A stretch of 64,000 nt of DNA, from positions 25,358,001 to 25,422,000 of the forward strand of contig OZ004608.1 in assembly GCA_963924565.1 (NCBI GenBank), read 5' to 3'. Under the pieces are notes generated by a model that was not told where the DNA came from, ran no database searches, and saw only the letters and a program-made list of their open reading frames with translations. Numbering within the stretch: position 1 is the first letter of the stretch; each line of letters opens with the position of its first letter. Shown here one piece after another: positions 1-21,000 of the stretch. The position numbers and the translations under genes were made by a program. The stretch comes from Ascidiella aspersa. Its lineage: Eukaryota.

Positions 1-3000
1 CTAAAAGGTATTGCGGTCAATTTTAAGTGCGCTGTTGTTTTAATTCTACAAAAGTTACACTATTGGTGTTGTAAAGATTTTTTTCGTGGTCGAATATGCA
101 ACTAATGTTTTCGAACAGGATACAAAAGGAAAAGGATTCAATGACAATTCGACATTTTGAACAAGTCGACAATCCTACATAGAAAATTAGGCTTTTTTCA
201 GCCTATACATAAATAAGAATATTTGATTTTCTGGGGCACGTGATGGTGCAAACCTGTATCGCAGTTCGAAGCTCATGAGTTCTCCTGCGATCTTGGTCGG
301 TTCTTCCCAAGTAACGACCACTCGGCCGTTAGATAAACCGAGGATGAGAGTGGGTGGTCCAGGTACTTTAAAACCAAAACAAGGTCTGTGTTTAAAAATC
401 GAATGGAAACTATTTAACAGCTGTTAAAAAATTGGAAATTGAATTATTTCGTTAGTTACGTTAAAAGCAACTTTTCAAACGTTAAAACATTCGTGACATC
501 AACACTTACTCTCTCCTCTTGTTGACTCCGATACGACGGCACTGAAGGGGCCTGAACTTTTACTCGTAAATCCTGCTACTCGCACGGAGTACTCGGTCTT
601 TGGTCGTAGACCGGTAAGAGTATAATCCTGGAAAAAAATAATTTACAAGTGTAAAAAATAAAGTACACATCGCTTAGTATATAATACACAAAAAAAGTAT
701 ATATCTATTTTTTTTTTCAAAAATTAATGGTTATACCAGTTCTTGATAAATTTAATTGAAACAATGTAAATGCGATTCATTTAATTTCATATCTTAAACA
801 TGAATTTGCCACAAAACAATGCAATTTTTCGTAGCACAGAATGCTGCAGTGTGAAGGGAAAACCAATTAGTCGGAAACAAAATTGCACCATCATCAATAT
901 AGCAAGGGGTCAGTAAAGGGAAGGGGTTAAGGTCATATAAGGGTAAACAGAAACCGGTGGATTCAATGACGGTCCACAGCAGAACGATTACACCAAAAAA
1001 TCATGCTGTTAATTAAGGAAATATCAGCGAAAAAACAATACTCGACAGCCGATGCCGGCGTCGGCAACATGGACGATTAGGTTAAAGCTTGATCACATTA
1101 GTTTTGTATCATGGCCAGTAGTGTAATGCATATTGCTGCCTGCAACTGGGATGCGTCTCACCATTCGCTCAATGCAGAGCTCGTAGCGCTTTCGCGATTG
1201 TCTATTGCCCCGGCACTGAAGACACAAAGTGCACTTAAGAAAAATCGCTGCAATACGCTATACCTTGCTATTGTCACTGTCCGTATTATTGTCACAATAC
1301 GTTTTTCTTATATAAAAATCAATAATCAAATTAGGGGCAGCAGAATACTCTAGCAAAGCTGCTAGCAATTCAGGCCAGACACTATTCAAAGATCTTAAAA
1401 GATATTTATACGCCAGCAAAGGCATTGTCAGAAAATCTTATTAAAATTGAGTTATTTCAACAAGATATACTGACAATGCCTTTGCTGGCGAAAGAAATCT
1501 TTTAAGAACTTTTGATAGTTTTTGACCTAAATTGCTAGCTTTGCATTCTGCTGTTATTGATCAGGAATTAAGATCGACATTTAACCTGTACGGGGAAAGG
1601 TGATTTCCATTATCAAATATTTAGTGCAACATTAATACTATATTTCTCCAGAAAAACGGTATACGCGTTCCTTGGTTTATTTATGAAACGCTAATGGACT
1701 CTTGCAGCAAACGTCGAACAAAATACAAAACAAATACAAAGTAGCTTAACTTTCACAGAAAAAAACTTAATAAGCCAAAAGTGAGCAACATCGCCCAGAC
1801 AAGAGGTAAATCACCCACCAGTCCGCGATTTGGATCCTGGCCAACGAAGTCCTCCATGTAGGTGTTGACGATGCGAGATCTGCTATGCGGTGAGGCCGCG
1901 TACGAGATCTGGTATCCCCGTATCTGGCCGTTGGCCGCCTCAGGCGACACCGCCAGCCAGCGGATACGAATCGCCGAACTGTTTACCGCTTGGAGGTTGA
2001 CGTTGCGCGGAGCAGCTTCGGGGACTGTACGAAAAATTAATAAGAACATTTTGGGTTGCATGCAAAAATCACATACATTTTTCTGTAAAGTCTGTAAAAT
2101 GTTCAAAGTATATGCTGGGAATTAATGTCCTGTTAGAAATTCGGATGTTTTACGACGATAGAATAAACCCGCACTTCCTGTTTACATGCACGTAAATGCT
2201 TTTTGGACAGCGTGCAAAAGGTTTAACGTATAAAAAATTATAAACGGTTCAATAACAAATCAAGGCATAATATATAATTATATCCTTGCTCTTTACAACA
2301 AATATGGGTCAAAATGCAATTATTCATATCTCTCTTTGTTCAACATGAAAACAAACATACTTGACTCGGCTGTGCTTATTTTCACTATTTTGCTGTCGGG
2401 GCCTTCCCCTTCTTCAGTAGAGGCGCACACCCACACCACGTAGTTGGTGTAGGGGCGTAGGCCGGAAATGACGGAACGAGTCTCTTCGGCCCCGACCCGT
2501 TTGCTCATGACGTCATTACGTCGCTCGATTTTGTAGTAGACAGTGAAGGCGGTGAGTTCGCCGTTCTGTTGCTCTTCGGGAGGCGGAGACCATCGAACCG
2601 CAAAGGAGTTGGCGGTCACTTCGCCGGCAACGACATCTAGTGGCGCCGCGGACGGAGCTGTTGCGGTCACGAGGTGGCGCGCCAAACGAAACATGCAATA
2701 TGCGTTGCATTCAGATAAGCATGCGCGAGATACAACATTTACGAGCGTTCGGAAGCAGGTTCGAGTTCGGTGAGGGATCGCGGGTTGTACGTTCACGACG
2801 GACACAACGAAGAAGATGCAAAAGAAAAAAAAGAAAAAAGAACATCAGATAGGAGGTTAAGGGGTTAAACCTTACTGTTACATTACTTTGATTTCTTACG
2901 CAAGTTTAAAACTACATGAATGTTTTTCCAATGCTAAGTCATGATACAAAACGTAGTGATAGTAAATAGCCTCTTGGCCTGGTTATTTATTTTTGTTAAA

Positions 3001-6000
3001 TAGTCTCACTCAGGGTCCGCGTAACGCTTGGGACCGAATAGCACTTTACTTGGGGGGGGGTTATATTATCAGCACGTACAACTGCAAATATCACATAGAT
3101 TTCGTCTTACCGTCGGGGCGCGTTGTCAAAGAAATTAAGGGCGTGAAGGCGCCAATGCCGGTCTCAGTCCTGGCCGCCAGCTTAATCTTGTACTCGGTGT
3201 TCGGGGTTAAGTTGTTCAACACGAAGTTCTTTGCGTTACGGTACATCGTCAACTTGCGCGGCTGCGTAAAAATAAATGAATAAAGGTTTCGGCAACAGCA
3301 GATGAGTTGGTATAAAACTGGTTTTCAGACAGGTGCTTTGCTTAGGGATATTTTTATCGTTTTTGTTGCAAACAGAAACCTGCTCAGCATCGAAATGTAC
3401 TCATAGTTATTTTGTTATATGCCAGTTTTTATTTATCGTTGAGAGGCTACTGAATAAGACTAGAAGCTGGAATCTTGTTAATGTGGCTTTGTACTTATGA
3501 TGCAACGCCCTTGTTGTATTTAAATATAAAAAAGGAAATTTACTTATGTATATGAACATTGCAGGGGGTTGACGTGTCGGCAAGTTAACACGAAACTGTA
3601 CACGGTCGAGAAGCGGGCGTCTGCCTGTGTTAACATCAAGTACGACAGCAGTAGTAAATGACCTATAAGTATGTTGGAGTGATGTCTCCGGTGATAAGCT
3701 TTGCTGTGCGACGCAATGGCTACACGAACATTGAATTTGCAGACGAAAACATGCCCATCAATTTGAACACAGCTAAGAAGGATTGAGGAAGGTTAATCTT
3801 AGGTTCCAATTATGATACAGGAAAAGCGCGTTATGGCTACGACAACAAAAAAATCTTACAAACATACAGCTTCATTATGGCTAGGCGTATACTGTGAGGT
3901 ATCTTTTGAAACTTAACCAGACGAAAGCGAGTTTGTATTGCGAAATAATATTGCGTCACTTTTGCTACCTCTGGACAGGACGAGCCATTGCAGCTGGTGT
4001 AGGAGAGTATGTAGTTGTTGATACTGGGCTTGGGACCGTCCTCGGTGGCTGGCCCGACATAACAAGGCGTGCTCCACTGCAGGCGAATCCGCTTCGACGA
4101 GAGAGCTACTCCGCGGAAATCCTGTGGCTGCGACGGCACTGTAGGCCGAAAATATTGAGTGAGTTTTTTTAGAAAAGAACAAAACTTCCTGTCACAGGTC
4201 AACAGGAAATAATTCATTTTTAAGTTTGGATATTAGGAAGTGGATTGATTTTGCCGAACATCTGGCCTGGCATTACCAGTTTGTACATCTAACTTAAATT
4301 TTACAGTTTTCTGGTAAAACTAACTGGCTGCCTTAAAAATATTGTAATCTGTTTAGGTATTAAAAGCACCACTGGGTCTTGTTATCTTGTGGCATGTCTC
4401 GAAAAATAACACGACTTCGTAATGCTTGTACATTACGAACAAGTTAGGCCTTTAGCGAATAAGCATATACACAATGTTCAAACCTCCTTGGTCGGTCTTC
4501 ACCATCACCATTTCAGACATGGGACCGATGCCGACGGAAGTTGCAGCAGCCAATCGGATCGCGTAAGTTGCGTGTGGCGTCAGGTCCTTCAGTGACGTCA
4601 GGCGCTTTTCGCTCACCAGCGAGTTCCACTCTGAAACGTTTTTATGTTTTTTTTTTTGCATTACGTGCGTATTTGGACTATTGAAGTGGTTACGTAGCAG
4701 TGTTGTTGTCTAACACCGAAAAATTGCTTGACGGTTTCTAGTGAGTCGCAGACGATTTAATGAATTTGTTTTATTTTAAAAACAGCTTTGATGAATCAGA
4801 ACATGAAAAAATAGATCGATTTTATCGATAACGTTTGGATGGAATCAAAAAATTGATTTATTCTCTATCCAGGATAAACAATGCGCCACGAAAGCATAAA
4901 ATATCTATATTTTTAAAGATTTATAGAAAGCTGTAATTTTTTTCCGGACCGAACAACTCGTAGGTTGATTTCTATTCTTTCGCCAACGTAGGTATATTTA
5001 TCCTTCAAATTTTGACAAGCTTTATTATTAGGGGTGCGCCATTAGCGTGCAATCGACTGACAGGCGCAAGAGAAGGAATTTGCGTTACCTTGGAAATTCA
5101 CGGGAAGAAAACTGACATCAGGCGGTTCGCGACGACCGCGCGTTAAAATCACACCGGCAGAAATATCGACAGGGCGCGCATTAAGCGTCTCAATGCATTA
5201 CAGATTTGACGAGGCGCCAAAGCACCGCAGACCACAGTCGAGTCAATATCCTGTCTAATGAGTTCCGGGTGCCGCTTTTCATCTTCCGTGACAATTGATT
5301 TGCCTCGCAGGGGACAGGGGTGGACGCGTGCGCTCATGAATATTTACGAACACGAAAGCGCCGGGGTTCGAAATATGGGGGGGGGGGGGCATAAATAATT
5401 GAAGTCCGACTAGAATGCGATTTCAAGTCCGAGCGCAAACAGCGAAAAATACACGAGTCGGATAAACAAAGCAAAACTATGGCGCGTGTGCGACAGTTAC
5501 AAAGACAATTTCGACCCTTTACATTTCGAATTCGGCAGCACGCTCATCAATATTAATCAGTCGCTCTCACTCAGCATTTCGTAATACGCGAGATGCTTTT
5601 TCAGACGCTGGGCGGCTGAAAGTCGCGTCGGATTTGGACGGTATTAACAAAAACAAAACAAAGAAAAAAACGAAATGTTTCACCGCAAGATAAAACAGGA
5701 TTGGGACTTTAGGTTTCAATGAGCTGCATTATTATAATATGTCTAGGTTTGACAAAAATGTTTTACTTATCGCGCGTTTTTTTAACATAAACGAAGCAGT
5801 GGCGGGATTTTTTCTTTTGTATAGGCTTGCATTCCAAAGATACAACCGTGGGAAAATAAACAATAAAATTTGTCAGACACAAAACGGAAAGTTTCTAGTT
5901 TAAAGGTGGTTGGAGCCACCCAATCTTCTTATTCGACACGCCGAAGGTTTGTCTTAAATAAAAAAAGGTCGAATCATGTGCGTATTTTAATTATCTGTTA

Positions 6001-9000
6001 ATCGTACAGGTGGGAAAAGCGAAAATTTTACATACCGGATATTGGCAGGGCTGGCAGGCTTGTGTAGTAGACACTGTAGCTGGTAACGTTTCCGTTCTTG
6101 CGCAGGGGCTCACCCCAACGAACCATGACGGTGTTGGTGCCGTATGGGTAGGCCTTCACATCAACAGGGGGACTTCCCGGAGCTGAAAATAAACAATCAA
6201 GTTAACTGTAGCTCCATGGGACAACGTTTTTTTTGCGCAATCGCCGCGGTATGAGAAGCAAACTGAACAATACCAGGCCAACGGACGTTAAATGATCGCA
6301 ATTGTTTTTTAGGCAAATAGCCCGGCTGCGTAAACATTCGAAAGGCCAATACTGCCTTTCTAAAGACCGATGCAAAGAAAAGCAAACTTAAACGGGCGAG
6401 AGATGTAAACAGAACTAAAGCGCACCGTTTCGACGAACGCGATCCAAACGGCAGCGAGTATTGCACCTAGTCCGTCAGTGCAATCGCTTCTCGCTGTTTA
6501 TTTACCCTACATGCTCATCCTATGTGTGTCCACAACAGCGAACGACAATCGGTGGGAGTTGCACTGCCGTGTGTGAGAACCGATTAGCCGCGTGCGAACG
6601 CAAAAGATATGTTTAGTTTATCTCAGTTGGGCGAGGAAAGCTAGTGTTGCTCCGTACGTTTAAATGTTGGCAAAGGATAGAAATATACGGAATTTGTTAG
6701 AAATGAGTTCTGTGAATATAACACTAAAATAGATTTTCTTTTTCTTTATGTCCTACACAAAATGCTGGATAGCTAAAAAATACATCAAATTATCATATAC
6801 ATTAAATTAATAAATCGAGGCAGGTAGGTTTTATCTAGCATTTTATCGCAAACATAAGCCCCAGGCAGGACAAAACACAAAGCCTTTTAAATCGGTGCGA
6901 CCTTTTCCATAAAATCGATAGCAATTACCTACTTCCTTTTAAGAGGTCAAGCGCAAAGCATTTAGAGAAAACGAGAACAGCACACGACCATAATTAAAAC
7001 CTTACAGTAAGAAATATTACTTCTGTTTTGTTGTCGTTGATTTTATGTCACAATCTCAATTATATTTAAAATAGAAAGCGCTTAGACCAACCGGACCGCT
7101 GTGCTGTGCGCAATTTCGGTGATAACGAGTTGAGAAAAGGCAGCACAGTACAGCGAGCAAAAAGGAACATCTGGCTGATGTCGCACGCCAAATAAAACCA
7201 GCACGCTTCGGGTCGACCGAATCTAACCGACGGTTTTACGGGTGCACCTGCGCATCAAAAGGCTAAGTCGTGTTTGGGCCACTAGCCAGCATCACGAGTA
7301 TAAGCAAATAACGGGAGCCCGCGCATTTCGGGCTACTGTCCTCTGTGTTTATAAATGTGTTTATAAAAGGGTGAGTGCCTATGGCGTGTCGCCCTCGTCA
7401 CAAAACAAACCACAGGCCAGGTGAAGCGGTAACCTTGCAGGTTCGGTATCAAGAATCTCTAATCTGAATTTTGTTAAAACATTTCATATCCAACAGGGCG
7501 TAAGTAAGCAAAAGGGGGGAAAGTGCTCCAATATATTTTGTCTCGGATAACTGGAATTCATTTTGGTGTGTTCATGTGACTGAAAAAAACCTCAACATTG
7601 ACACATTCGGAACACTTAATAATAAATGACTGTGGTTAAGTGTAAGAAGCCAAAAAGGGGGCGTTCTGTTTTAGAAAAAGAACCTTATAGTTGTGGCCCT
7701 ACCTGCTTCTCCGGTTCTGAGGTACACCGGGGTGCTTTTCGCTCCTTCCCCTTGCTCGTTGACTGCAGCCACACGAATCTCGTACATCGAATAAGGCTCA
7801 AGTCCTGACACTGTGAAGCTGTAAGGAAAATAAAGGGAAATTCAACCTAGGGTTACAACTGTCGAATTGCATTAGGTGTCATAACTACACAGCTTATTAA
7901 GATGATATAGGACAGGTCTACGCGACCTTTTAGGCTTTGCCATTCATTATTAAGCTACACAGCTTATTTTATCGACACCTAGTTTCGTTAAGTTTATCTA
8001 ATTTTGCAATGGGAACGTTGTCCAATCTTTGAAAAGTCTATATTTGTAAAATGTTGTTGTATTTAATTGAATATATGTATCGTAATCCGTAAGCGGAGTC
8101 AAAAAAACAAAAAAATACATTTTTTATTAGGCGATCCGTTGGGCATGAGCCTTTTAAGCGTTATTTGACGTGTATCCGCTTAGTTATTAATGCGATTCTT
8201 AAAAGCTAGATTGGCCGATCCCCAAACGTCAACATGGCCTCGTCGAGATTAAACAGACAATTCTACATTTTTCAAGTTCTTATTTACGTCGTTTTGCAAC
8301 AGAGCTTCACAAATATGAAGATGGTTTTGGAAAAAGAATTAACTTAATGAATTATTGCAAAAGTCGAAACCAAGTGAAGCCATATAACGTTTTAAGGTGG
8401 CTGTTTGTACTGGCCTTAAACCGTCGGGAATATTCTGAAACCTTTAAGGTCCTATTTGCGCAACACGTGACGCAACGTAAGCAAATAACGTCAGAAGAAC
8501 CGCAGCGTATCCGGCATACAGCTAGCGCAGTGAAAATAAAAGACGTATTAAATGGTGAAACGTTGGATAGAAAAAGCGTACAGACTTGCCGTCTAATGGA
8601 GGCCATTGTCAGGAAGAGAATCAAATAAAAAATACGTTTCTTTGATCTGAAACCGCTCGAAGACTATGAAGATCAAACAGTTTCCGAATCTTGGAAACTA
8701 TTTTAGGCCTTACCTTGTGGACGAAACCTGGTACAGGGTTTGGTAAGGCGGCGTACTAAGCATCGGCTTGTAGTAGATGGTGTAGCTGCTAACCGGCTCC
8801 GCGTTGCCCGACCTCCACGTCACAGAGAGCGATTGTGACGAAATCCCTGCGTCACCCAAGCGCCGAAGATCAACAGGAGGCTGCGTCAATACAAGCAGTT
8901 TAAGTAAGTTAGATTTTAACAGGATTTAATACTAGATTGTAAATTTGTAACCATGCTTGCTGATTCTGTCGATTTCTTTGAAGTACTGAAATTGGTTATA

Positions 9001-12000
9001 TGGTTTATTTATTATTCAGAATTTGGAATAAATATTGTTTTTAATTAAAAAATATGCGACCTATCTCGAATTGAATACGTTATGCACCTTGTCTATAGAC
9101 AGAAGACAACCTACATGAAAATAGTACAACTCTATAACACCTGCGCCCTTACCCAGGGGTAATAGCTTGAAACTAAGTGTATTCAACACATATTGAAGAA
9201 ATTAACACGCCTCAGCTTAAAATGAGACATACACAATCAGCCGAAAAGCACCACTTTCAATAAAATACGACATTAACTGACCTTGGGAATGGCCTTGACC
9301 CGCACGTGGGTGGTGACGTTGATTCCATTAATAAAGGAGCTCGCCTCGCATGTGTAGTTGGCCGATTCTTGCACATTCTTAAGCGGAAGCACCAGCCGTC
9401 CGATTACCACCGCCGACTTCTCAGGCAGGACGTCCACGAAACCGTATGGCGTTTCTGTTTTCAGAATAGAAGACAAAAATTGGTAACCGTTTTACAGGAC
9501 AAGTAAAGTGACTCTTTTAGTTTCCTTGTTTGATTTGAAAAGGTTGGACCTACACAACATTCCGAGATTTTATGTGAGCGTTTGGGCCCGGGATAGGTTC
9601 TTACGCATTCATACGCCACAGTGTGACATCCACTAAAGAGCCACGTATATGCCGGTACTTACGTTTGCGCCACTTAACCCTGGGCATGGGAGCTCCTACA
9701 GCCACGCAAGTGATGTTGATGTCGCCGTTCTGCGCCACTTCGTAGCTCGCATGCGGCTTAATTGAAAAGCGCACGGGAACGCGACGCACTGTGGATGACA
9801 AATTCACACTTGTAAGTACAATGTACACTAACAAGAAAGAGCTTGTATAAGTATAGTGCTCATTTAAACTCTTCAGTCAACGGCCCGCCATATTACATCA
9901 AAACTTTCCGAAAATCTTTCCGATAGATGTAACACTTGAATTGATGTTACTATTTTTGTAATCCATATTGTTCGTTGCGTAACCCTTGCACAATCGCGAC
10001 CCTATAGTTTGCGAAGCTCAGCTTATAATTTGAACAGCTTGAAATGGGTACGTTTGCTGCCTAACGTTTATTGCCAATCAGTATAAAAACACCACTACGG
10101 CATTGTAAGATATCTGATTTCGAAGACCCAGTCGTCTGCTTAGATAAACTTTATTTAAGGTAGCAGATTGTCACATTTCTCACGGTGGGCCCGCTGATAC
10201 GTCCAAGTCGACAGAAATATCTTACAGGTAAGGATATACCTCCAGCGGACTACGCAGTTTAAAAATAACAAACTTGCTGCAGTGCTTTGCAAGGCGTACG
10301 CAAACACTACTTTACAACAACAACAGAGACAACATGTTGTGTATGGTTTCTTTTATAAAAAATAATTCTGAAAAGTGTCCTAATGATTTCTAATATTCTT
10401 TGCAAATAGTTGCATATGGATATAATAATTCTGTAACGATATAATTCAATAAACAGCAATTCAGAAAAGAATCATTGCATTAAACAATTGATTCTCGAAT
10501 ACACATCGTCACATATAAATAGCAAAAATATTCCTAAATATGCAAACAATGAAACGAGAATGTTCGCAAAACACGAATATTCCCAAAAACAAAATGAAAA
10601 GTTCATTATTTTGGAAGTGTCAAATAATGAACGCTGTAGTCGTTTTTGTAACATCATGAACGTTTAACTTTACTAATATATACTTACGATCGCGCACTAT
10701 GGTACGATCCAGAAGTAAGATTTCAAGGAAAGAACGAAAGAAAATTAAAATCGATAAGTGTAACACGGATCCATAAAAGAACACCGACATCGGGTTTTAA
10801 GGGTATAATTTTGATATGTTTCGCAAAGGCAAGCGTATGTCTTAGTTATCGATTTTAGATACACGTCCAGACAAAAGGCTGAAAGAAAAACGTTTGAAAC
10901 AAATATAAAAAACATGTAACGCCCGAACTTAACAAAAATGTCAACTTTATTAGAGCCTCGAAATTTGTAAAACTTACATTTTCAAGAGGGATTTTTTCAA
11001 AATGCAGTCAAACCAAATTTTGCTTTTTTACTTTTTCTGTATCTTAATCTACTTGCTTCAAACTTAGCTAATTTTATTGAGATAAAACTATTATTTTTCT
11101 ATAGTATATAAACACAAGAGAGACCGCATAAGCATACGTTAGCTGTAAGGGGGTCGTTAGTTTCCTAAAATATTTGATCAGATAGTACCTTTAACGTAGA
11201 GACGGGCATCGTCAGAAAAGATTGTCCCGAAAGAGTTGCTGGCTGAGCAGTAGTACCTCCCATCGTCGCTGTAGTTGCTTTTGTGAATAGTAAGCGAACC
11301 TGGGAGAAAGAAGCAAGTATATAAACCATCCACCTTCTTAGAGCGATGTCCAAAATATTTTTAGAGAAGGATACACGGATAATCACTTGTAAATACGAAG
11401 AACGAAATTTGTTAAAAATTAATAAACAGACGTCGTTTTCGCTAGGTCGTGTGGAAATTCTTGCACATAAGAAATGCAATCCAAATTAAGAAACACCATT
11501 ACTACCTGAATTAAGCAATCATTAATAGGAGATCAAAACCGATGGGAAATTCGTGTGCGCATGAACCATGTATATTTGATGAGAAACAGTTTATAATATA
11601 AACGGCCCTAATTTTCTTCAATTGTGTCAATCTACGACACCAGATAAAACTCTATTACAAAACGGCGTGCCTTAAATAGGAGCTAGATTTCGAAATAACA
11701 AATCAAATGTACGACTTACAAATTTTGTCAGCGATGCTGCAAACAAACGTTAGCCGGACTAATTTCGAGTTTGGGGCATAAATAATGCAACAACTCCATT
11801 TCATTTGTTGTGCGCATATGTAACGTGACAAGGTCAAACTTGGCGGGTTAAAGGTCACGTTCGTCGAGTAGCTTTAAAATCGAAACTTGCAGCTCGTTGA
11901 TTTTGAGTTCATATTTTCGCTCGTTAAGTTAGCGGTCTTGCCTCATGGGTAAACATCATTATTTTTTTATAACGCTTTCTAGCAAGCATTACGTCACGCA

Positions 12001-15000
12001 ATGTACATCTAACCGGCATACTTTTATACAGTAAAAAAATTATTTGTATTTTACAGATGAAACCAGGTATAGTTGGATTTTCACATTAAGCATCAAACCG
12101 TTTGTTAAACTTTGGTTTTATTTGAAAATGATTATAAATCCTTTTTGAAAGGACTGTTCGATTTCTATATCGATCAAGGTACGTAATGTACTAATACGGC
12201 AAAACAATTAAGCAAAATAAAAGAAACGACTTTCATGGTATGACAATATACAATAGTATAGAAGCCTACGTGCTACATCGCACACACAATGTTACTAATA
12301 GGGAGTACAGACCGCACATACAACAAGGCCGATAAAACCCACGATACGAGTGTTTGTTTAACTATTGCGAACCTATTACGTAAGTGGAAATTTGGTGCCG
12401 CTCTTTTGGTGCCGAAATCACACCGCAACTAAGAATTAGACCTTGTGTATTGGGTACATGTCACCACGCCATGTTAACTACCACTTTGACCACGGTATGG
12501 CTTGGGGAAGTAGGAAAGGTTTTCGAGTTTTTTCTGGGTATACGCCCCCGGCATAACCGTGAAGAGGCACTTTGGTTGCTCCTTTCTCTTTTTTAAGTGT
12601 CGGCAGCTGGAACTGTCTCGACAGCGACGTCGGCGAAAAACAAAAAGGCACGGACGTCAAGGTAATTGCAAGGCGCTCGCAATAAACCTGACACTTGCCG
12701 TGGCCAGACTTTTCCGTTGTTTTTAGGTCGACAACTACGCAGGCTTATCGGAGTCACGATCGGAAGGTTCTTGGTAAAATGTGTGCACAGCTTCCAAACA
12801 GCCACCTAAGCGGCAAGGCACGTTCTCTTATCTTACTGTTTGATTGTCGTTCAGGCAACAGTTTGCATCTTTCTTCTTGAATATGGAAGAAGATTTTTTC
12901 ATTTGCACAATTCTTATAAACATATTAAAAAGCCAAGAAACAATATCGAAATGCCCGTTGGAAAAATTTAGCAAATTTTACCGAATTTACAACGAGAAAG
13001 ACTTGTGTTTAAATAAGGTCGTAAAGCGCGACTTTAAACAACAAATGATACTATATTATTATCGTATCATTGCTTAAACTAACTGACGCAAGACCCAAGC
13101 TAACTATATGTACCCCGGTATATATGTATTTAGTACGTCAAAGTCACCGGCGCCAAGCGAAAGTGATGGCTTAATAAAAAGACAAAGTGATAACTGAAAC
13201 GAAATACGTCAATGTCAACGGTTAGGTGTAGTGTGGGGCAACCATGCAGACAGACGGTTTTATTAAATGATCACGACATTGACGCTGCAAGTTTGTGAGC
13301 GCGTATAAGTAGCAACATCATCTGCAAACCGTACTTTGAGCCTTAACGCCAAACAAAAGTAGGACCTTCACCCCATACAGCTCTGCACAACACGGTAAGC
13401 GATAAGCTAACGCCAGCTTCGGGACTGAAGTGAGCCGTCGCGATCGCTCAGTCACGTACGACTGCAAGCTTGTTTGGATACGACACACAAGGAAGCACAT
13501 CGGGAAGCATAAGGCGGGGTCATGGGTGCAAAAGCTTAAGCAAAGTCGCTGGGGACCAGCTCGCTCGGGCATCGATCTGCTCGCTAAATGGCTGCGCTCG
13601 GGTCGCGGGAGAACAGATCGAAGAAACCCTGCGCCCGCGGCCCGGCGTGTCATTTGCCGAGAGCCGATTTGTCAGAAAATCGCATTAGTTCGACCGTCCG
13701 TTCAATCGAACCTAGTTGGTTGGTTGGCTGGCTGCTGGCAGACGGACTTTACACAGAAGAAGATTTATAACGAAAATATAACACAATGAAGCCGGTTTAA
13801 ACGTTTATAATAGAAACTTCAACAACGTTTGGCAACCATGAAATCACAGTTTTCTACAAAGTATTTAAACTCGTCAGAATATACTTGGCTTTTACGCTTA
13901 AAGTTGCGTTCCTAACTGTGTTGTCTTTATTATAGTTTTATAGTAAGTGTCGTCCAAAAACATACGTGGTCAACTTACTGTAGTAATGCGCACAATACAA
14001 CAGCTAAATATAAACAATTATACCACGTAAGAGCCGTGTGAGTAATGTACCAACTTGCAAATTTATCATTTGGTATGCGAAGTAAGTTATTTCAACAGTC
14101 AGAACCATACCATGCATCCTCCGGGCGTATTTAGCGTTCCCAAGATAAGAGCGATGTGGTGCGGCGGTAATGCACCGTAGATGGTAGGGCTGCGGGCAAA
14201 AGTCAAATCCCAGGGCTTACCGCCGCACCGCGAAATGGGTTTGGCTGGGCCGGTAATGAACGTCGCCCAACAGAGGTGGGGCAAATCGCGTGCAACCCCC
14301 TTTTGCCCGTTTGGTTGCGTTGGGCTGGTTTGGCAGTTGGAGCGCAATTTGTCGTTGGGCCATTATAATTATTTTTGATCACGGTTTAGCTTTGAAGAAA
14401 ACTTTTAAGAAGACATTGCTGTGTGTATGTTGTATTAAGTTTAATGAAATTTTTAAATTAGGGCGCAACTAGTAAGGTTGGTGTTGTTACACTGTTATAA
14501 GGTTTTCATAAATAAATAAAAAATTGTTCACAAATATATGATAGTAATAGTTTTAATTTTGTGAACATTTGAATACTATGGCGTGCCATATTATACCACA
14601 TCATTTGTTAAAAAAAGTAAATATTTAATTACGTGCAAGAACGTAGGCTACTGCCATTTGTTTAGGGGGCTATCTAACTGACAGATTGTAACGTTGAAAA
14701 TACTCAGCCGCTTCGAAAACTTGCGTTAATTACACCCAACACACGGCGCATCTAAAGTGAAGGCTAAATTATGGTGGGTACCCAATTAGGGGCGAACACA
14801 AAACATTGGGTTACTCCCGTCAGGTGCCCATATATAGCCCCACCTTCGTGCATTGCTTCAACCCGGGGGGATTGACCCGCGCGTTTACAGTCAACAGTCG
14901 GCCTATGGCGCATGTGGTAAATATGGGGAAAAGATACTTATGTTAAGCTAAGAAGGATTGATTTTTTTTTCAGTCGGCCTGAACTGAAAAGCGCGATACT

Positions 15001-18000
15001 TGCGTTGCACTAGCATTTAAAATTTACAGTTGAATGTGATCTTTCGTTAAAATAATTATGAATATCGCAAGAAAAGATCTTGATATGCTGGTTTCAGCTG
15101 AATTTATCTTGCAAAAGGCAGAACAACTAAACCCTCAAAATCAACTGCACTCCATTATGGAACTGAAGACGTGGTTTTAAGCGATATACATTTTCCTTTT
15201 TAACCAAAAAGCAGATTCTACCCTGGTCTCATTTTACAATGTGCAAATCTCTCGGCTTTTAGTAGAAAAATAGGAGATCCTATATGTTTTCTTTGTTTTT
15301 TAACTGGTCTGTTTATCTAATTGGTAATAACATGTCTGTTTTTATTTAAGTAATTAACATATTGGGATCGACGTATAAAGGAAAAAGTGCGATGCCAGCA
15401 TAGTAAGCAAATTTTTTTTGCACAGTGGTTTATTGTTAGCCATAAGTATCGCAGTTACTAATACGCACACCATCGGAACAAAATGTCAAAGTCAAACTGG
15501 AAGTGGTTTACATAGGCGCTCTACATGCCTAATTAAAAGCTCAAAGTACAAATTCGATCTTAAGAAAATGCCTTCCGCCTTGTGGGGTGCCGCAGACGCC
15601 GAGACTATGTTTGTGTGCAAAGCGGCTGCTGGCCGTTGCTATGCACGCGAGAAACTGGGGAGGGGACCACCATGTGGGCACGAAACGCGACCAGCAAGGG
15701 GGCAACACAAGGTCCGAGTAGTAATTGGCTTGTAACGAACGGAGACGGTTTCCTTTCGTGCTAAAAGCAGCATCAGTTTTAAATCGGCAGAGAGAACGCG
15801 GCTGATCGCATAGCAGGAGATAGCTGAAACTGGTTATCGCGGTGTCGTACTCGGGTGGATTTCGTGTCTAGTTTGTCGACATGCTTTGCGCAAATAACGA
15901 AAAGGCGTTGTCCCAACCGTTGCTAAAAATTAGCGAGGGAATTCATTTTTTTCGTTAACCACGAACACCGTAATAACGTTTTATAATAGATTTCGGGCGC
16001 ATATATACATATTTGTTATATAACAGTGTTTCATTGCGCACTAGTGTGCTATTTACAAGTCAACATGACTATGCCCATAGCGAGCAATTATGAGTATATA
16101 ACAGCTGGAAAATTTTAGAAAAACGTAATCGTAGGGAGCGGAAAATCTTAGCTGGGTCGCTGAGTCAACCATTAACGGCGTATATGACAGATGGGACTTC
16201 CAAAAACTGCCGTGTCTACCACAGCGTCTCCCTGAACGAGGCAAACTTTTGACCTGGCGCAGCACCGACCGTTGGATCTTCATGCAGCACTAAACACGGC
16301 GGGAATGGCAGCTGACGAAAGCGGTTCACGACCCCGTCGGTGGTCGGAGAGGATTAATTGCGAGACGCATCAACGCCGCTCGTGTGCAAACCTTAGGGGA
16401 TATCAAGGCGGTAAATCTTGCCAGGAATCGCCGGGCGCCGAATGACGAATGCTATAGAGTGCAACAAACGCCCGAATTCATCCTCAGCGTTGTAAGACTG
16501 CGGACCACCCATTGGACTGGTGTTTTGTTGGCGAAGTTAATGCGTCTCATAAGTTAGTCGTTCCGTGATTGAGATTATCACCGGGGCCGATGCGTGGGAA
16601 CAGGATGCGGCGTGATGCGGGAAGATTTAAGGGGGCAAACGGGGGTCGGTGGCAAAATCGTTTGGGTGAAATGTTATGACAAGCTCTTAAAACAATCCGT
16701 GATGGGATGGTTTGAAATGCTCGAAGGCAATGCGCATTACGTCAACGCGTCGATAACATTGCTTAACGAATCAACTGACCATTAAAACTTTGATGATCAT
16801 GCCGGCTGATTTAATTAGTTAAGCTCCAAATTACAGAGCACAATTTACATTTTGATTTTTTATAAAGTGTTTCCGCATCAAACAGAACTTTAAATTTCGT
16901 TTGACAACCCAAAAAAGCGGCTGTACTGAAATGCAAGTCATTTTGAGTCAGCTAGTCAATATGCAATAACGAAAAGTTAAAATTTGCCAAAAATAACCAA
17001 TCCGTCTTCCTATCTGTCGGCGACGCCATAAGTTAAAAGACGACAGCTGCATAAACACGTGTCCAGGCGATCGTCCGGTGCACGTTTGGCTCGCCGCACC
17101 AATCCCAAAAGAATTGAATCTAGTGAACTCGATTAAAATTTGACAATTAAAGGGGAGTTGATGGGTCGCGAGGTCAGAAACCCGACACTGATTTGGCAAA
17201 ATAGAAGAGAAGCGAATGATGAAAAAGGAGAACTTTTAAAGTGAAGATATGTGTTCCGCCCCTCGACTTTTGATTCAATATTGGATTATAAAACGGCACA
17301 CAAATGCAATGAAACGCGCTGGTTCAAAAAGTTCATCCAAGCCTAGTTTACCTGACTATAAACCTAAGGTATTCGTATATTGTTAATTAGAAATTGTGCT
17401 CTAAATATAAGGTCACGGCGACCAATAGCTTTTAACGTGTAGTTGACACACAGCGCGGTGTGAAATTCGCCAGCGGAAACCGCTGTGTTGTTGCCGCGAG
17501 ACCGATGCGCATCGCGCGGGGGAGGGTTACAAATAGTGACGTAAATTCCGGGTAGAGACGAAAAGCGCCGCGGGACCAGCTCGTTCTCGCCTTTCGTAGA
17601 AAACGCGATTTCGCGCAAGATCGCCCGACCGAGCACTTGACCCTAGGTAAACCCGCGCGGCTTCTCACGACACGCCGTATCTTGCTGGAGGTTACTTGGT
17701 GTCATTGCTGTTTTTTATACAGGGAAATCTAGCTCACGAGAGACACTTTTTTCGGCAATTTGCTAGTAATTTATCTTATAGCCAAACCATGACAATTATG
17801 CACTTTTTTATCGCGCTCTTACTAATCTATTTTTCGTCATGTGCCCTTAAATTTTATAATTTCATTTTTTAACAATGTATTTTTAAAACAATCTTCCCGC
17901 TTGAAAGATCAATAATTTAAAAACTAACACTTCAAATTGCTACATTTTTGAATAATTATTTTGGACCTATAGATGTATAACTGCATACTAAACTGTTGGA

Positions 18001-21000
18001 TTCCGGCGCAGTTGTTTGACAAACTAAAATCACACATTATTTAAACCTACATGTGCGCCTCGCCCATTTGTTAGGTAGCTTTCCTATTCACACTAAAAAA
18101 AGGTTAGAACTCTAATTTGTACTACCGTCATGCTGGAGGGCTGTGTGGCCTCCCTTCGTGTATATGGGAAGATGGTCCTTATACCAGGTGATAGTGGCCG
18201 GTGGATTTGCCTCCACGCCGCACTGAAGGGTGATGTCGCGAGTCAGTTCCACTGTGTCCACGGTCGGGTTGATCGCAATATGGGGAAATCCACGCGGCTT
18301 TGAATTTTCTGCAAGAAAAAAAAAATATAAACAAGACGCAATTTCGCACATGCACAGCCAATCGGGTAAATGCTTGCTAACAAATACTTTCGGGTTTATG
18401 CTTTTTCCTATCAACGTTGCTTGGAGTTTGGTTTCTCATCGAGGGATGTCAATCCCGGGTAAATGTGCGGCCATCTTAAAAGTGTATAACTAACATAGAG
18501 CGATATTACTCTGCCCGGTGCTACGACACGATTATCTGTTTACATAGGTCAGAGGCTTAGAGCGAAACCCGACGATAACAAGCAGCGTGTCAACGGATCG
18601 CGGCCCAGTTTTAGAGACTTAAAAAAATAACTTCGCAGGCTGTACGACGACGGACGAGCAAACTAAATCCCGCGGGGGGTGGTGGAATACTGACAAATCC
18701 CATTTGCGCAGCGTTCTGTCCGCGCCAGGAACCGGTTCCCCTGGGCGCGATAATTTGAAGAAGTTTTACGCTGCGCACGAGCCAAATTGATTAAGGGACA
18801 TTTTGCAGGCAGTTAATGCGAACGACCTGCGACTTGGATGCGCTTGGCCATTGGCTAGTGACAGATATGAGTGCTGGGTGTATTTTGAGATCTGCAAATG
18901 GTTGTTATGACGTTTTGGGAGACATAGGCGTGCATTATTTATGAATTTGTTAGTTATAGTACATTTTCAATAATTATAACACGACACCGTATTTGAATCT
19001 TTGTTATTCACGCAATTACTCAGCATTCAATGTTCAGCGTTGAAACTCCATATTGCAGCACATGCGTTCTACAACGCTCAACGTTAAACATTAAACAAGA
19101 AACGCAAAGCAGTCGCGTAAATCCACTACGGTTGTATTTCACAGTAAGTTAAAACAGATTTCCTATAATTCCATGCGAAACCCGACACCAGAACCAACCA
19201 AATCCTTTTTGCAAACAACGTTTAGAAGGCCGATTGAAGAAGTCGACCGGTCAGCTATTGTTTGGCGCGTCTAGCCATAAATCCTATGGCAAGATAGAGG
19301 CGGTGGGGAGGCGTACTGCAATACGATACAGGGACAAACTTTAGTTGGATGCTTTTGGTGCGAAGCGATTCAATTGCGGTCAAAGGTGGGTAAAGCGGGA
19401 TTACGAGATCAGCAAACCGATTGTTCACATTTATACTTTCGGGATAACGCATAACGTGAAGTAAATTGGATTTCGATCTGTTTTTTTATTAGTTTATTTA
19501 CTCAACTTTAAATACTTTGTCATCGTGACTCAACGGACACGGCGTGATTTTGTTTTCGTTAGCTTTGTGCGCCGAGAAACGCATGGGGCGGCGTCCGACA
19601 TGGGAGAGTGGCAGTTGCGTATAGCGAGCACGGAGCGAGCAAGTCGAACGTCGGGTCGCGGATGCCAGTCAGAACGCAAAGAGCATGACACGCGGCAGCG
19701 GCCCGAAAAATCGCGAGCGCCTTTGACACACGGCAAGGTTCAGCTGGCGGACTTGACACAGGGGTCGTTTGATGTGCTACTGCCGACCATCTTTGGAGAT
19801 ATTTTCCCAGGGTTTGCAACTGCAAGCATATATTAACGGCGTCCGGGGTCGGATACCTTGGCCGCCGTAAGGTGACACCTTCTCGGCCTGTCAGCCGGTA
19901 ATTATTGCAATTGCGAACGAGGGAAAATCGCGGTGTTGCCACCCACGCGTTACTACTGGGTACTGGGCAGCAGCTTTCCGGTAGGATGTTAAGGAAGTAA
20001 CTGCTTCTGCATGCAAGAATCGGTTTCCGATAGACACAACGGGGCAACAACCTGTGGCAATGGCCACCCACGAGCGTCACATATTTTTAATGAGCTTGCC
20101 ATTTTTTTGAAGAGTAATAGGAAGTAAAGCCCTCGAAACCAGGGGGTTGACTAAACGCAAAGTCAATTTCGCTAGAGGCGGAAGACGCCAGATCTACTTC
20201 CAACGGACGGTCGAGTTGGCTGTTGTAAGTCGGTACGATCACTTGCATGTAATTTGTGCAATACGTGACAGATATACACTTGAACATGCGGTTCCAGCCG
20301 TAAAAAACGCGACAACGAGATGTCAGACGTTGCAACATAAAAAATGTCCCTTTTATTGTCAACGTTTGTCAAGTCTTGAGGTGGTTCATTGACGATTACA
20401 TCTCGAATTTAGAAAAACGCGATTGATGGTCAACTTCAGAAGCCATATAAAGCGTAGGCGTACCTCGAACTGTAATCCAGCAACCTATATCGAGAGCTGT
20501 CAATCCCGCATGAAATGCTATGAAAATCGCACCGATTTTGGCACCAAAAATAGCCATAGTCGTCAAAAGGGATAAAGATCACGCCAAATCCATATTTTCA
20601 TTGAAATTACCCTGTCAAGCAATAAAGGCCACGCAAGACCGACAGTATATCGCGAAAATTCGAAAAGTCGCTGACACACGCAGCATTGGGCGTCACGTGA
20701 CAAGGGGATGGCCAATCGGCAGCGTTGGACGATTTGGCGAAAGACGACAGTTCAACTGATCGACACATGGAAGCGAGGTGGTCGTGTCGCGGAGTAAGGT
20801 GGGTGGTAACAGTTGGGGCTACGAAAATAGCGCCTGCGGTGAAAGGGGGTGTTGACGGTTGGCGTTGGCATGGCGACGTGACAAAACGCGGACCCAAATA
20901 TTTGCCAAGTTCAAAGTTCCCTTCCTGTGTTGCCGCCTGAGGTTATTATTAAACGGTTCGACAGACGTAGAACACAGTGCTCAAATCTTTTGGGGAGAAA

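Follow-up and report, generated by a model that had tools for sequence, protein, structure and literature searches.

The locus described here raises the question of whether the LAR-family receptor gene of Ascidiella aspersa uses small alternative exons at the sites where vertebrate PTPRD, PTPRS and PTPRF carry the mini-exons meA, meB and meC. Which postsynaptic partners the vertebrate LAR-family receptors bind is determined by the meA and meB inserts. Both mini-exons are documented in vertebrate LAR-RPTPs (PMC4423211, PMC8711739), and these papers together with PMC12598525 place meA inside Ig2, immediately ahead of the Gly-x-Leu with which the next strand begins, meB in the Ig2–Ig3 linker before Val-Arg-Arg-Val, and meC in FN5. 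Among the literature matches listed, no paper on LAR mini-exons of tunicates or amphioxus was found, and supplementary exon tables of papers on microexon evolution (e.g., PMC8797185) may list chordate LAR exons. The "invertebrate" passages seen in PMC8711739, PMC12598525, and PMC6994669 concern axon guidance or liprins and not splicing, and PMC10883964 contains no mention of "invertebrate," "Drosophila," "elegans," or "zebrafish." A preliminary description of the window (the whole stretch of 64,000 nucleotides that was analysed) had proposed that a single gene may run a positionally conserved splice code with different insert sequences at the three sites.

Identity and exon structure of the gene

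The minus strand of the window contains 13 exons, all of them open and with consistent phases, which lead from Ig2 to FN5 and are followed by the start of a 14th exon corresponding to FN6:

18126–18308, minus strand: Ig2a, first half of Ig2; phase 1 at both ends; PDB and tblastn (amphioxus LAR residues 133–183)
11189–11299, minus strand: Ig2b, second half of Ig2; phase 1 at both ends
9663–9788, minus strand: Ig3a, first half of Ig3; PDB and genome search
9282–9454, minus strand: Ig3b; gene model and tblastn
8714–8880, minus strand: FN1a; gene model
7703–7818, minus strand: FN1b; gene model and tblastn
6036–6182, minus strand: FN2a; gene model and tblastn
4484–4630, minus strand: FN2b; gene model and tblastn
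3969–4138, minus strand: FN3a; gene model
3111–3261, minus strand: FN3b; gene model and tblastn
2361–2657, minus strand: FN4, a one-exon domain; gene model and tblastn; AG-free zone of the acceptor 211 nt
1819–2024, minus strand: FN5a, ending in phase 0 (CTG/GTGGGT); PDB and tblastn
510–627, minus strand: FN5b; gene model, PDB, and amphioxus alignment

Sequence comparisons identify the gene as a receptor tyrosine phosphatase of the LAR type (type IIa). The 13 exons are collinear with amphioxus LAR (tblastn, 13 HSPs), with Ig2, Ig3, and FN1 to FN5 in the order of the LAR ectodomain, and protein searches, which were run exon by exon and not with a joined protein, gave PTPdelta, PTPsigma, and LAR as the best PDB matches of the exons tested. 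Ig2a matched Ig2 of these three receptors (phmmer, E about 1e-10), Ig3a matched PTPdelta with an E-value of 3.6e-15 compared with 2.8e-9 for the best non-LAR chain, and the best matches of FN5a were the second FN domains of 6x3a_A (PTPdelta) and 6x39_A (LAR). When Ig3a was compared with the organism's own genome (308.6 Mb), 1 match was obtained at E<=0.001, and this one Ig3a-like locus indicates that the gene is the sole LAR-type gene of the genome. Ig1 was not found in the window by tblastn with amphioxus LAR at E<1e-3. The part of the gene within the window is ectodomain, and the transmembrane segment and the two phosphatase domains would be located beyond the window's first base. Introns are found at every domain border of the gene and also within Ig2, Ig3, FN1, FN2, FN3, and FN5, that is, in six of the seven complete domains in the window.

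A search of Ig2a against proteins of 33–105 residues found no homologue, and Ig3a had 743 matches among protein representatives, the best 150 of which were dominated by proteins with many Ig domains. The short LAR-like matches among these best 150 of 743 are single genomic exons with read-through of the upstream intron and therefore carry no information on junctions; the closest such single-exon relatives over Ig3a, among the matches listed, were P0087 (73% identity) and P0108 (66%). Region 147–345 of P0151 matched at least 120 proteins, two from amphioxus and the other 118 from vertebrates as far as their names show, and no tunicate LAR was among these at least 120 matches listed.

Host introns at the meA, meB, and meC positions

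Three introns of the gene correspond to the mini-exon sites:

11300–18125, minus strand: meA-position intron between Ig2a and Ig2b; 6,826 nt, phase 1
9789–11188, minus strand: meB-position intron between Ig2b and Ig3a; 1,400 nt, phase 1, within the Val codon of ..LYVK-V-RRVP..
628–1818, minus strand: meC-position intron between FN5a and FN5b; 1,191 nt, phase 0

The junctions 18126>11299, 11189>9788, and 1819>627 of the preliminary description are exact in the gene model, and its assignment of the three introns to the meA, meB, and meC places was borne out by the residue offsets of PDB isoforms and by the amphioxus alignment. The Ig2a match stops at residue 152 in all PTPdelta chains (5xnp_D, 7ceg_A, 4yfg_B, and 4rca_A), whereas the residue aligned to residue 2 of Ig2b is 163 in 5xnp_D, 166 in 7ceg_A and 4yfg_B, and 172 in 4rca_A. 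The constant end of Ig2a and the shifting start of Ig2b thus locate the meA difference of 0, 3, or 9 residues within the stretch that holds the Ig2a/Ig2b junction. Between Ig2b and Ig3a, the gap amounts to 1 residue in 7ceg_A and 4yfg_B (200 to 202) and 5 residues in 5xnp_D (197 to 203) and 4rca_A (206 to 212); since it is 1 residue (the split Val codon) in A. aspersa and 1 or 5 in PTPdelta, corresponding to an insert of 0 or 4 residues, meB falls exactly on the Ig2b/Ig3a junction. Ig2b aligns over its full length to the amphioxus isoforms, from 1 residue (the split-codon Gly) past the point where these diverge, and FN5b, in a gap-free alignment, begins directly after the 9 residues that one amphioxus model has inserted in FN5. 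All three sites have a homologous host intron and a frame compatible with a cassette exon. An intron at the right place is necessary for a mini-exon, yet it says little here, because most domains of this LAR gene have an intron in their interior; the three introns are to be expected in an orthologue whose domains are nearly all split.

The meA-position intron is the longest of the 13, the others measuring at most 1,520 nt. It contains no Pfam family in its six intronic ORFs, no Rfam family, and no internal repeats of at least 40 nt; one extra match in the own genome (92 nt, 77%) was obtained by a search that skips very common words, so that the intron may still contain repeats. According to a home-made matrix, the weakest splice sites of the gene include the Ig2a donor (3.1, ACG/GTAGTA), the Ig2b donor (4.9), and the Ig3a acceptor (0.7). 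Weak splice sites often flank regulated exons.

Among 15 amphioxus LAR sequences, four have no insert at the meA site, six carry an insert of 12–13 residues, and three a second, unrelated insert of 11–12 residues. At the meB site an insert occurs in 0/15, and at the FN5 site a 9-residue insert is present in 1/15, one old model. Judged from these isoforms, "same place, different insert" exists already in amphioxus, an invertebrate chordate, and the occurrence of unrelated inserts suggests that the meA site was probably spliced alternatively before the vertebrates. In A. aspersa, the single gene has retained each of the three host introns at precisely the corresponding codon; taken together with the amphioxus meA isoforms, this makes it plausible that the meA site, at least, arose before the vertebrates. 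That the introns hold amphioxus-like inserts was rejected: in comparisons of the amphioxus insert peptides with the introns, 24, 41, 54, and 32 of 60 shuffles scored as high.

Mini-exon candidates and RNA data

Candidates were defined by acceptor and donor scores from a crude home-made matrix without training on this species, and had to be in frame, free of stops, and 3–60 nt long. Small candidates with good splice signals, which the preliminary description had seen in each of the three introns, are indeed present in each, but their number is not above chance. The meA intron contains three (dinucleotide-shuffle mean 3.1; at least three in 60 of 100 shuffles), the meB intron three (shuffle mean 0.8; at least three in 8 of 100), and the meC intron one (shuffle mean 0.6; at least one in 46 of 100). 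With seven candidates in the 9,417 nt of these introns (0.74 per kb) versus three in the 6,414 nt of the other ten (0.47 per kb), the former are no denser in candidates than the latter. When no score threshold was applied, the meA, meB, and meC introns yielded 146, 30, and 22 in-frame AG..GT candidates of 3–30 nt, respectively. As a further measure, the AG-free zones of 14 real acceptors span 18–211 nt (median about 45), and a zone of at least 120 nt precedes 4 of 680 intronic AGs. Four small AG..GT segments deserve description:

10688–10696, minus strand: 9-nt meB-position candidate; donor GTAAGT, crude score 5.95, AG-free zone 142 nt
1162–1215, minus strand: 54-nt meC-position candidate; acceptor 2.5, donor 8.6, AG-free zone 16 nt
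11497–11505, minus strand: 9-nt meA-position candidate; acceptor 3.2, donor 4.4, AG-free zone 100 nt
838–843, minus strand: 6-nt AG..GT pair in the meC intron; poor donor GTGCTA, behind the longest AG-free zone inside the introns (160 nt)

The first two had been reported in companion notes to the preliminary description (as 10696–10688 and 1215–1162) and are present as described. The segment 10688–10696 is the best single candidate overall, albeit unproven; it would give K-V-R-D-L-R-R in place of K-V-R-R, is single copy in the genome, and has by eye no UGC in the last 23 nt before its acceptor. When the three introns were shuffled 500 times, 33 of the shuffles contained a candidate at least as good, with thresholds set post hoc. 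The candidate 1162–1215, also single copy, would encode 18 residues with two Cys and a basic run, and 11497–11505 would add G-S-N with the following Gly kept. None of the meA-intron candidates combines a good acceptor with a good donor.

The only run of the species on record as RNA, of which about 6/100 was read, was compared with positions 9655–15654, a stretch that takes in the meB intron and positions 11300–15654 of the meA intron. This stretch received 16 reads, with 0 on the exons Ig3a and Ig2b, 0 joints, and 0 loose ends. Ten of the 16 lie only partly inside the stretch, and the first mate is on the plus strand in all. No read fell into the bin of 10688–10696 and none on 11497–11505. As the flanking exons are without reads, the RNA gives evidence of neither direct joining nor mini-exon inclusion. 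The introns are also found in the contig sets of three more runs (shares 0.84, 0.66, and 0.36), whose kind is not recorded as RNA.

Explanations and comparison with known systems

The explanation that accounts best for these data, and that has about an even chance of being correct, is one of conserved host introns with no proven splice code, in which the listed candidates are chance products and direct joining is the main form. In this reading the three introns, with phases 1, 1, and 0, occupy ancestral chordate positions; vertebrates carry meA, meB, and meC at these positions, and amphioxus has alternative cassettes at the meA one. Most of the mRNA would in all likelihood be joined directly at the three junctions named above, and the small AG..GT candidates, including the 9-nt and the 54-nt one, would be the chance yield of intron size and composition and presumably stay unused. 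The window itself gives no support for mini-exon use, which is a hypothesis built on an ordinary, conserved gene structure.

Several observations count against this explanation. Direct joining is what we infer, with 0 junction reads among the 16. The meA site is alternatively spliced in both vertebrates and amphioxus, so a cassette there may well have survived in a chordate placed between the two. The meA intron is very long and the Ig2a, Ig2b, and Ig3a splice sites are weak, and 10688–10696 joins its long AG-free zone to a consensus donor.

An alternative, given somewhat less than an even chance, is that one or more mini-exons in the me introns are genuine and subject to alternative splicing, most likely in the meA intron (an inherited site with a new sequence) or, as 10688–10696, in the Ig2–Ig3 linker. 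The documented vertebrate meA and meB, the amphioxus meA isoforms, the long meA intron, and its weak flanking splice sites agree with this reading, as do the AG-free zone, GTAAGT donor, and single-copy flank of 10688–10696, a candidate matched by only 33 of the 500 shuffles, although the thresholds were set after it had been seen. The Gly found after the insert in vertebrate and amphioxus sequences is also retained with the candidate 11497–11505. On the other side, no meA-intron candidate is good at both ends and the introns lack similarity to the amphioxus inserts. The missing meB insert in amphioxus and the lack of RNA support also argue against it. If correct, an altered Ig2 loop or linker length would affect ligand choice, as with vertebrate meA and meB.

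It is unlikely that A. aspersa uses a mini-exon code of its own at no fewer than two ancestral LAR sites, for example 10688–10696 as a linker insert of three residues together with a meA-intron cassette; such a code would, with the amphioxus isoforms, trace the LAR splice-insert code back to the common ancestor of chordates and imply that the LAR sites are conserved with insert sequences free to change. A lineage-specific code working at all three sites, in which the 9-nt and 54-nt exons take part, is highly improbable: the exact host introns, the candidates in each of them, and the FN5-site insert of one old amphioxus model speak for it, but the candidates are at chance level, the AG-free zone of the 54-nt candidate is shorter than that of any of the 14 real acceptors, and, according to PMC8797185, the microexon programmes of fly and mammal have almost no exons in common and conservation drops even in amphioxus, a turnover that makes retention at three sites together unlikely.

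A. aspersa shares with vertebrate PTPRD, PTPRS, and PTPRF the gene family and the host positions, but has one LAR gene where vertebrates have three paralogues. The phase-1 frame would permit an insert starting with G-xx, like the published ESI, GGTPIR, and ELRE, whereas the candidate peptides (V-R-D-L, the 18-residue two-Cys basic loop, and G-S-N) are unrelated to the published vertebrate inserts. Another likeness is to Branchiostoma LAR (cluster of P0164, XP_066298195.1 among others), likewise a single invertebrate-chordate LAR gene, whose isoforms differ from one another right at the meA site by inserts unrelated to the vertebrate ones; these are annotated isoforms with accessions, in contrast to the A. 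aspersa window, where none is annotated or observed. Lineage-specific neural microexon programmes dependent on eMIC/Srrm provide a further parallel, since there, according to PMC8797185, the position or the target class may be retained even though the exons are replaced from phylum to phylum.

Gene model and the three introns

An exon series was seen as open blocks on the minus strand of 1-18414, and the exon ends were set from the sequence. The resulting model and the introns considered here are:

18308-510, minus strand: 13 exons, from Ig2a (18308..18126) to FN5b (627..510), with the FN6 start at 365; all open, phases agree
11300-18125, minus strand: meA intron (Ig2a to Ig2b), at the mid-Ig2 mini-exon site of vertebrate PTPRD/S/F
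9789-11188, minus strand: meB intron (Ig2b to Ig3a), at the Ig2-Ig3 linker site
628-1818, minus strand: meC intron (FN5a to FN5b), at the FN5 site

Exons searched singly against the PDB sequences each matched LAR-family receptors. Ig2a retrieved PTPdelta, PTPsigma and LAR at E ~1e-10, with one many-domain titin chain ranking above them, and Ig2b retrieved the same receptors at E 4e-7 to 1e-4 below contactins and titin; Ig3a matched PTPdelta at E 3.6e-15 (top non-LAR chain 2.8e-9), and FN5a matched the second FN domain of 6x3a_A (PTPdelta) and 6x39_A (LAR). A tblastn search of the 64-kb window, including 18415-64000, with the amphioxus (Branchiostoma) LAR protein P0286 gave 13 collinear HSPs from Ig2 to FN5, and none at E<1e-3 for its first 132 residues, so that neither Ig1 nor the 5' exons were located. 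As the Ig3a exon had one match across the whole 308.6-Mb genome, Ascidiella aspersa has a single LAR gene at the sensitivity of this search. The gene is an ordinary LAR orthologue, with the ancestral intron positions retained in its exon structure, and both the gene and these positions are of an already known kind.

The preliminary description had placed introns at the three vertebrate mini-exon sites. They are real, its junctions (18126>11299, 11189>9788 and 1819>627) are exact, and the match to the vertebrate positions was confirmed by PDB chain offsets and amphioxus alignments. For meA, placement relied on PTPdelta chains, which represent several splice forms: in each, the Ig2a match stops at chain residue 152, and Ig2b residue 2 aligns to residue 163 (5xnp_D), 166 (7ceg_A, 4yfg_B) or 172 (4rca_A and others), offsets that correspond to 0, 3 or 9 additional meA residues. 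Yamagata et al. (PMC4423211) locate meA9 between two strands, at residues 188-196. Aligned with the amphioxus isoforms, the Ig2b exon matches over its full length and starts one residue past the point where these diverge, this residue being the Gly of the split codon in the A. aspersa gene. At meB, the Ig2b and Ig3a matches are separated by 1 residue in 7ceg_A and 4yfg_B (200->202) and by 5 residues in 5xnp_D (197->203) and 4rca_A (206->212); since in the window gene the split Val codon supplies a single residue between them, meB with its four residues falls exactly at the 11189>9788 junction. The reviews PMC8711739 and PMC12598525 locate meC simply as "in FN5". Here the FN5b exon aligns without gaps, beginning directly after the 9-residue insert of P0165, an old Branchiostoma floridae model, and the spacing of the FN5a and FN5b anchors in 6x3a_A differs by 9 residues from that in 6x39_A. 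The positional match is less remarkable than it sounds, because mid-domain introns split six domains (Ig2, Ig3, FN1, FN2, FN3 and FN5) and an intron lies at every domain border.

Mini-exon candidates and transcript reads

The three introns were scanned for in-frame, stop-free candidates of 3-60 nt with one crude acceptor/donor score. The meA intron contained 3 candidates (shuffle mean 3.1; at least 3 in 60/100 shuffles), the meB intron 3 (mean 0.8; at least 3 in 8/100) and the meC intron 1 (mean 0.6; at least 1 in 46/100), compared with 1, 0 and 0 on the respective antisense strands. Together the three introns held 7 candidates in 9417 nt, against 3 in 6414 nt for the other ten introns, and without score thresholds they offered 146, 30 and 22 in-frame AG..GT pairs of 3-30 nt. 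The "small exon candidates with good splice signals" credited to these introns are therefore what any such intron would be expected to provide. Two had been singled out:

10688-10696, minus strand: 9-nt candidate in the meB intron
1162-1215, minus strand: 54-nt candidate in the meC intron

The 9-nt candidate stands out a little. Its acceptor lies behind a 142-nt AG-free stretch, its donor is GTAAGT and its flanks are single copy; AG-free zones of at least 120 nt precede 4/680 intronic AGs (median of all 14 nt; range for the 14 real acceptors 18-211 nt). It was equalled or bettered in 33/500 shuffles of the three introns, by thresholds picked after the candidate had been seen, and under the same post-hoc thresholds it had no equal on the antisense strands or in the other ten introns. 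The 54-nt candidate combines a strong donor with an AG-free zone of just 16 nt.

Two splice sites of the exons themselves were also recorded. The FN4 acceptor (2658-2870) has the 211-nt AG-free stretch, the longest of the 14, in agreement with a separate entry of the preliminary description. The Ig2a donor (18119-18126, minus strand; ACG|GTAGTA) is followed 3 nt on by a second GT, a putative tandem donor adding one in-frame residue.

About 6/100 of X4, the only RNA run for the species, was mapped as raw reads onto 9655-15654, which takes in Ig3a, the complete meB intron, Ig2b and 4.3 kb of the meA intron. The gene was not covered at this depth: 16 reads were placed, 10 of them partial, with 0 on Ig3a or Ig2b, 0 joints and 0 loose ends, a result that bears on neither side. 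The reads form 8 pairs within 10855-15654, with the first mate on the plus strand in all, and may derive from sparse pre-mRNA of this minus-strand gene or from diverged repeats.

Inserts in amphioxus LAR isoforms

With the Ig2a exon as query, a homologous-protein search yielded no hit of comparable length. The Ig3a search of protein representatives was dominated by many-Ig proteins and brought in P0097 from Branchiostoma belcheri, in which the meA site carries an 11-residue insert; when a region of P0151, a longer protein of the same cluster, served as query, 2 of the 120 matches listed were from amphioxus and the rest had vertebrate names. From the 28-member cluster of P0164, 13 of the 15 listed members were aligned together with P0165 and P0151. 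These isoforms are annotation models (P0296, P0286, P0293 and P0291 also among them), and they diverge at the meA site exactly between '..RIRLIDS' and 'GALQIE..'.

States of the meA site in aligned amphioxus LAR models (n=15)
No insert: 4/15
13-residue insert or its 12-residue form: 6/15, one a partial model
Second, unrelated insert of 11-12 residues: 3/15
Odd sequence: 2/15

None of the 15 aligned sequences has an insert at the meB site, and at the FN5 (meC) site 9 extra residues occur in 1/15, an old model. Further variation among the isoforms comprises a 4-residue insert in phosphatase domain D1 and, after FN7, a cassette of 17 residues. At meA, these models show that "same position, different insert" is already on public record for an invertebrate chordate; no paper on amphioxus meA-site inserts appeared among those listed in the literature searches.

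Prospects of regulated splicing

In the main mRNA the flanking exons would be joined directly. A real exon at the meA site is a tentative, though serious, possibility by bracketing, because vertebrates and amphioxus both use this site. The 9-nt meB candidate is unlikely to be real, the 54-nt meC candidate still less so, and mini-exons at all three sites together are very improbable.

The 6.8-kb meA intron leans towards regulation: the others measure at most 1.5 kb, and it exceeds every other one in the gene 4.5-fold. A genome search gave a single further match to it, a weak one (92 nt, 77%), and it showed no Pfam family in 6 intronic ORFs, no Rfam family and no internal repeat of 40 nt or more. 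Weakness of the donors of Ig2a and Ig2b and of the Ig3a acceptor leans towards regulation as well. Against regulation lean the chance-level candidates and the apparent lack of similarity to known inserts: no counterpart of the amphioxus insert peptides was found in the window introns, the best scores being met by 24, 41, 54 and 32 of 60 shuffles. The rapid turnover that PMC8797185 reports for non-vertebrate microexon programmes also leans against regulation here.

The proposed lineage-specific LAR splice code at the three sites is a reasonable, testable hypothesis to which the window itself adds no evidence. A functioning mini-exon here would be a fresh addition to the LAR mini-exon kind.
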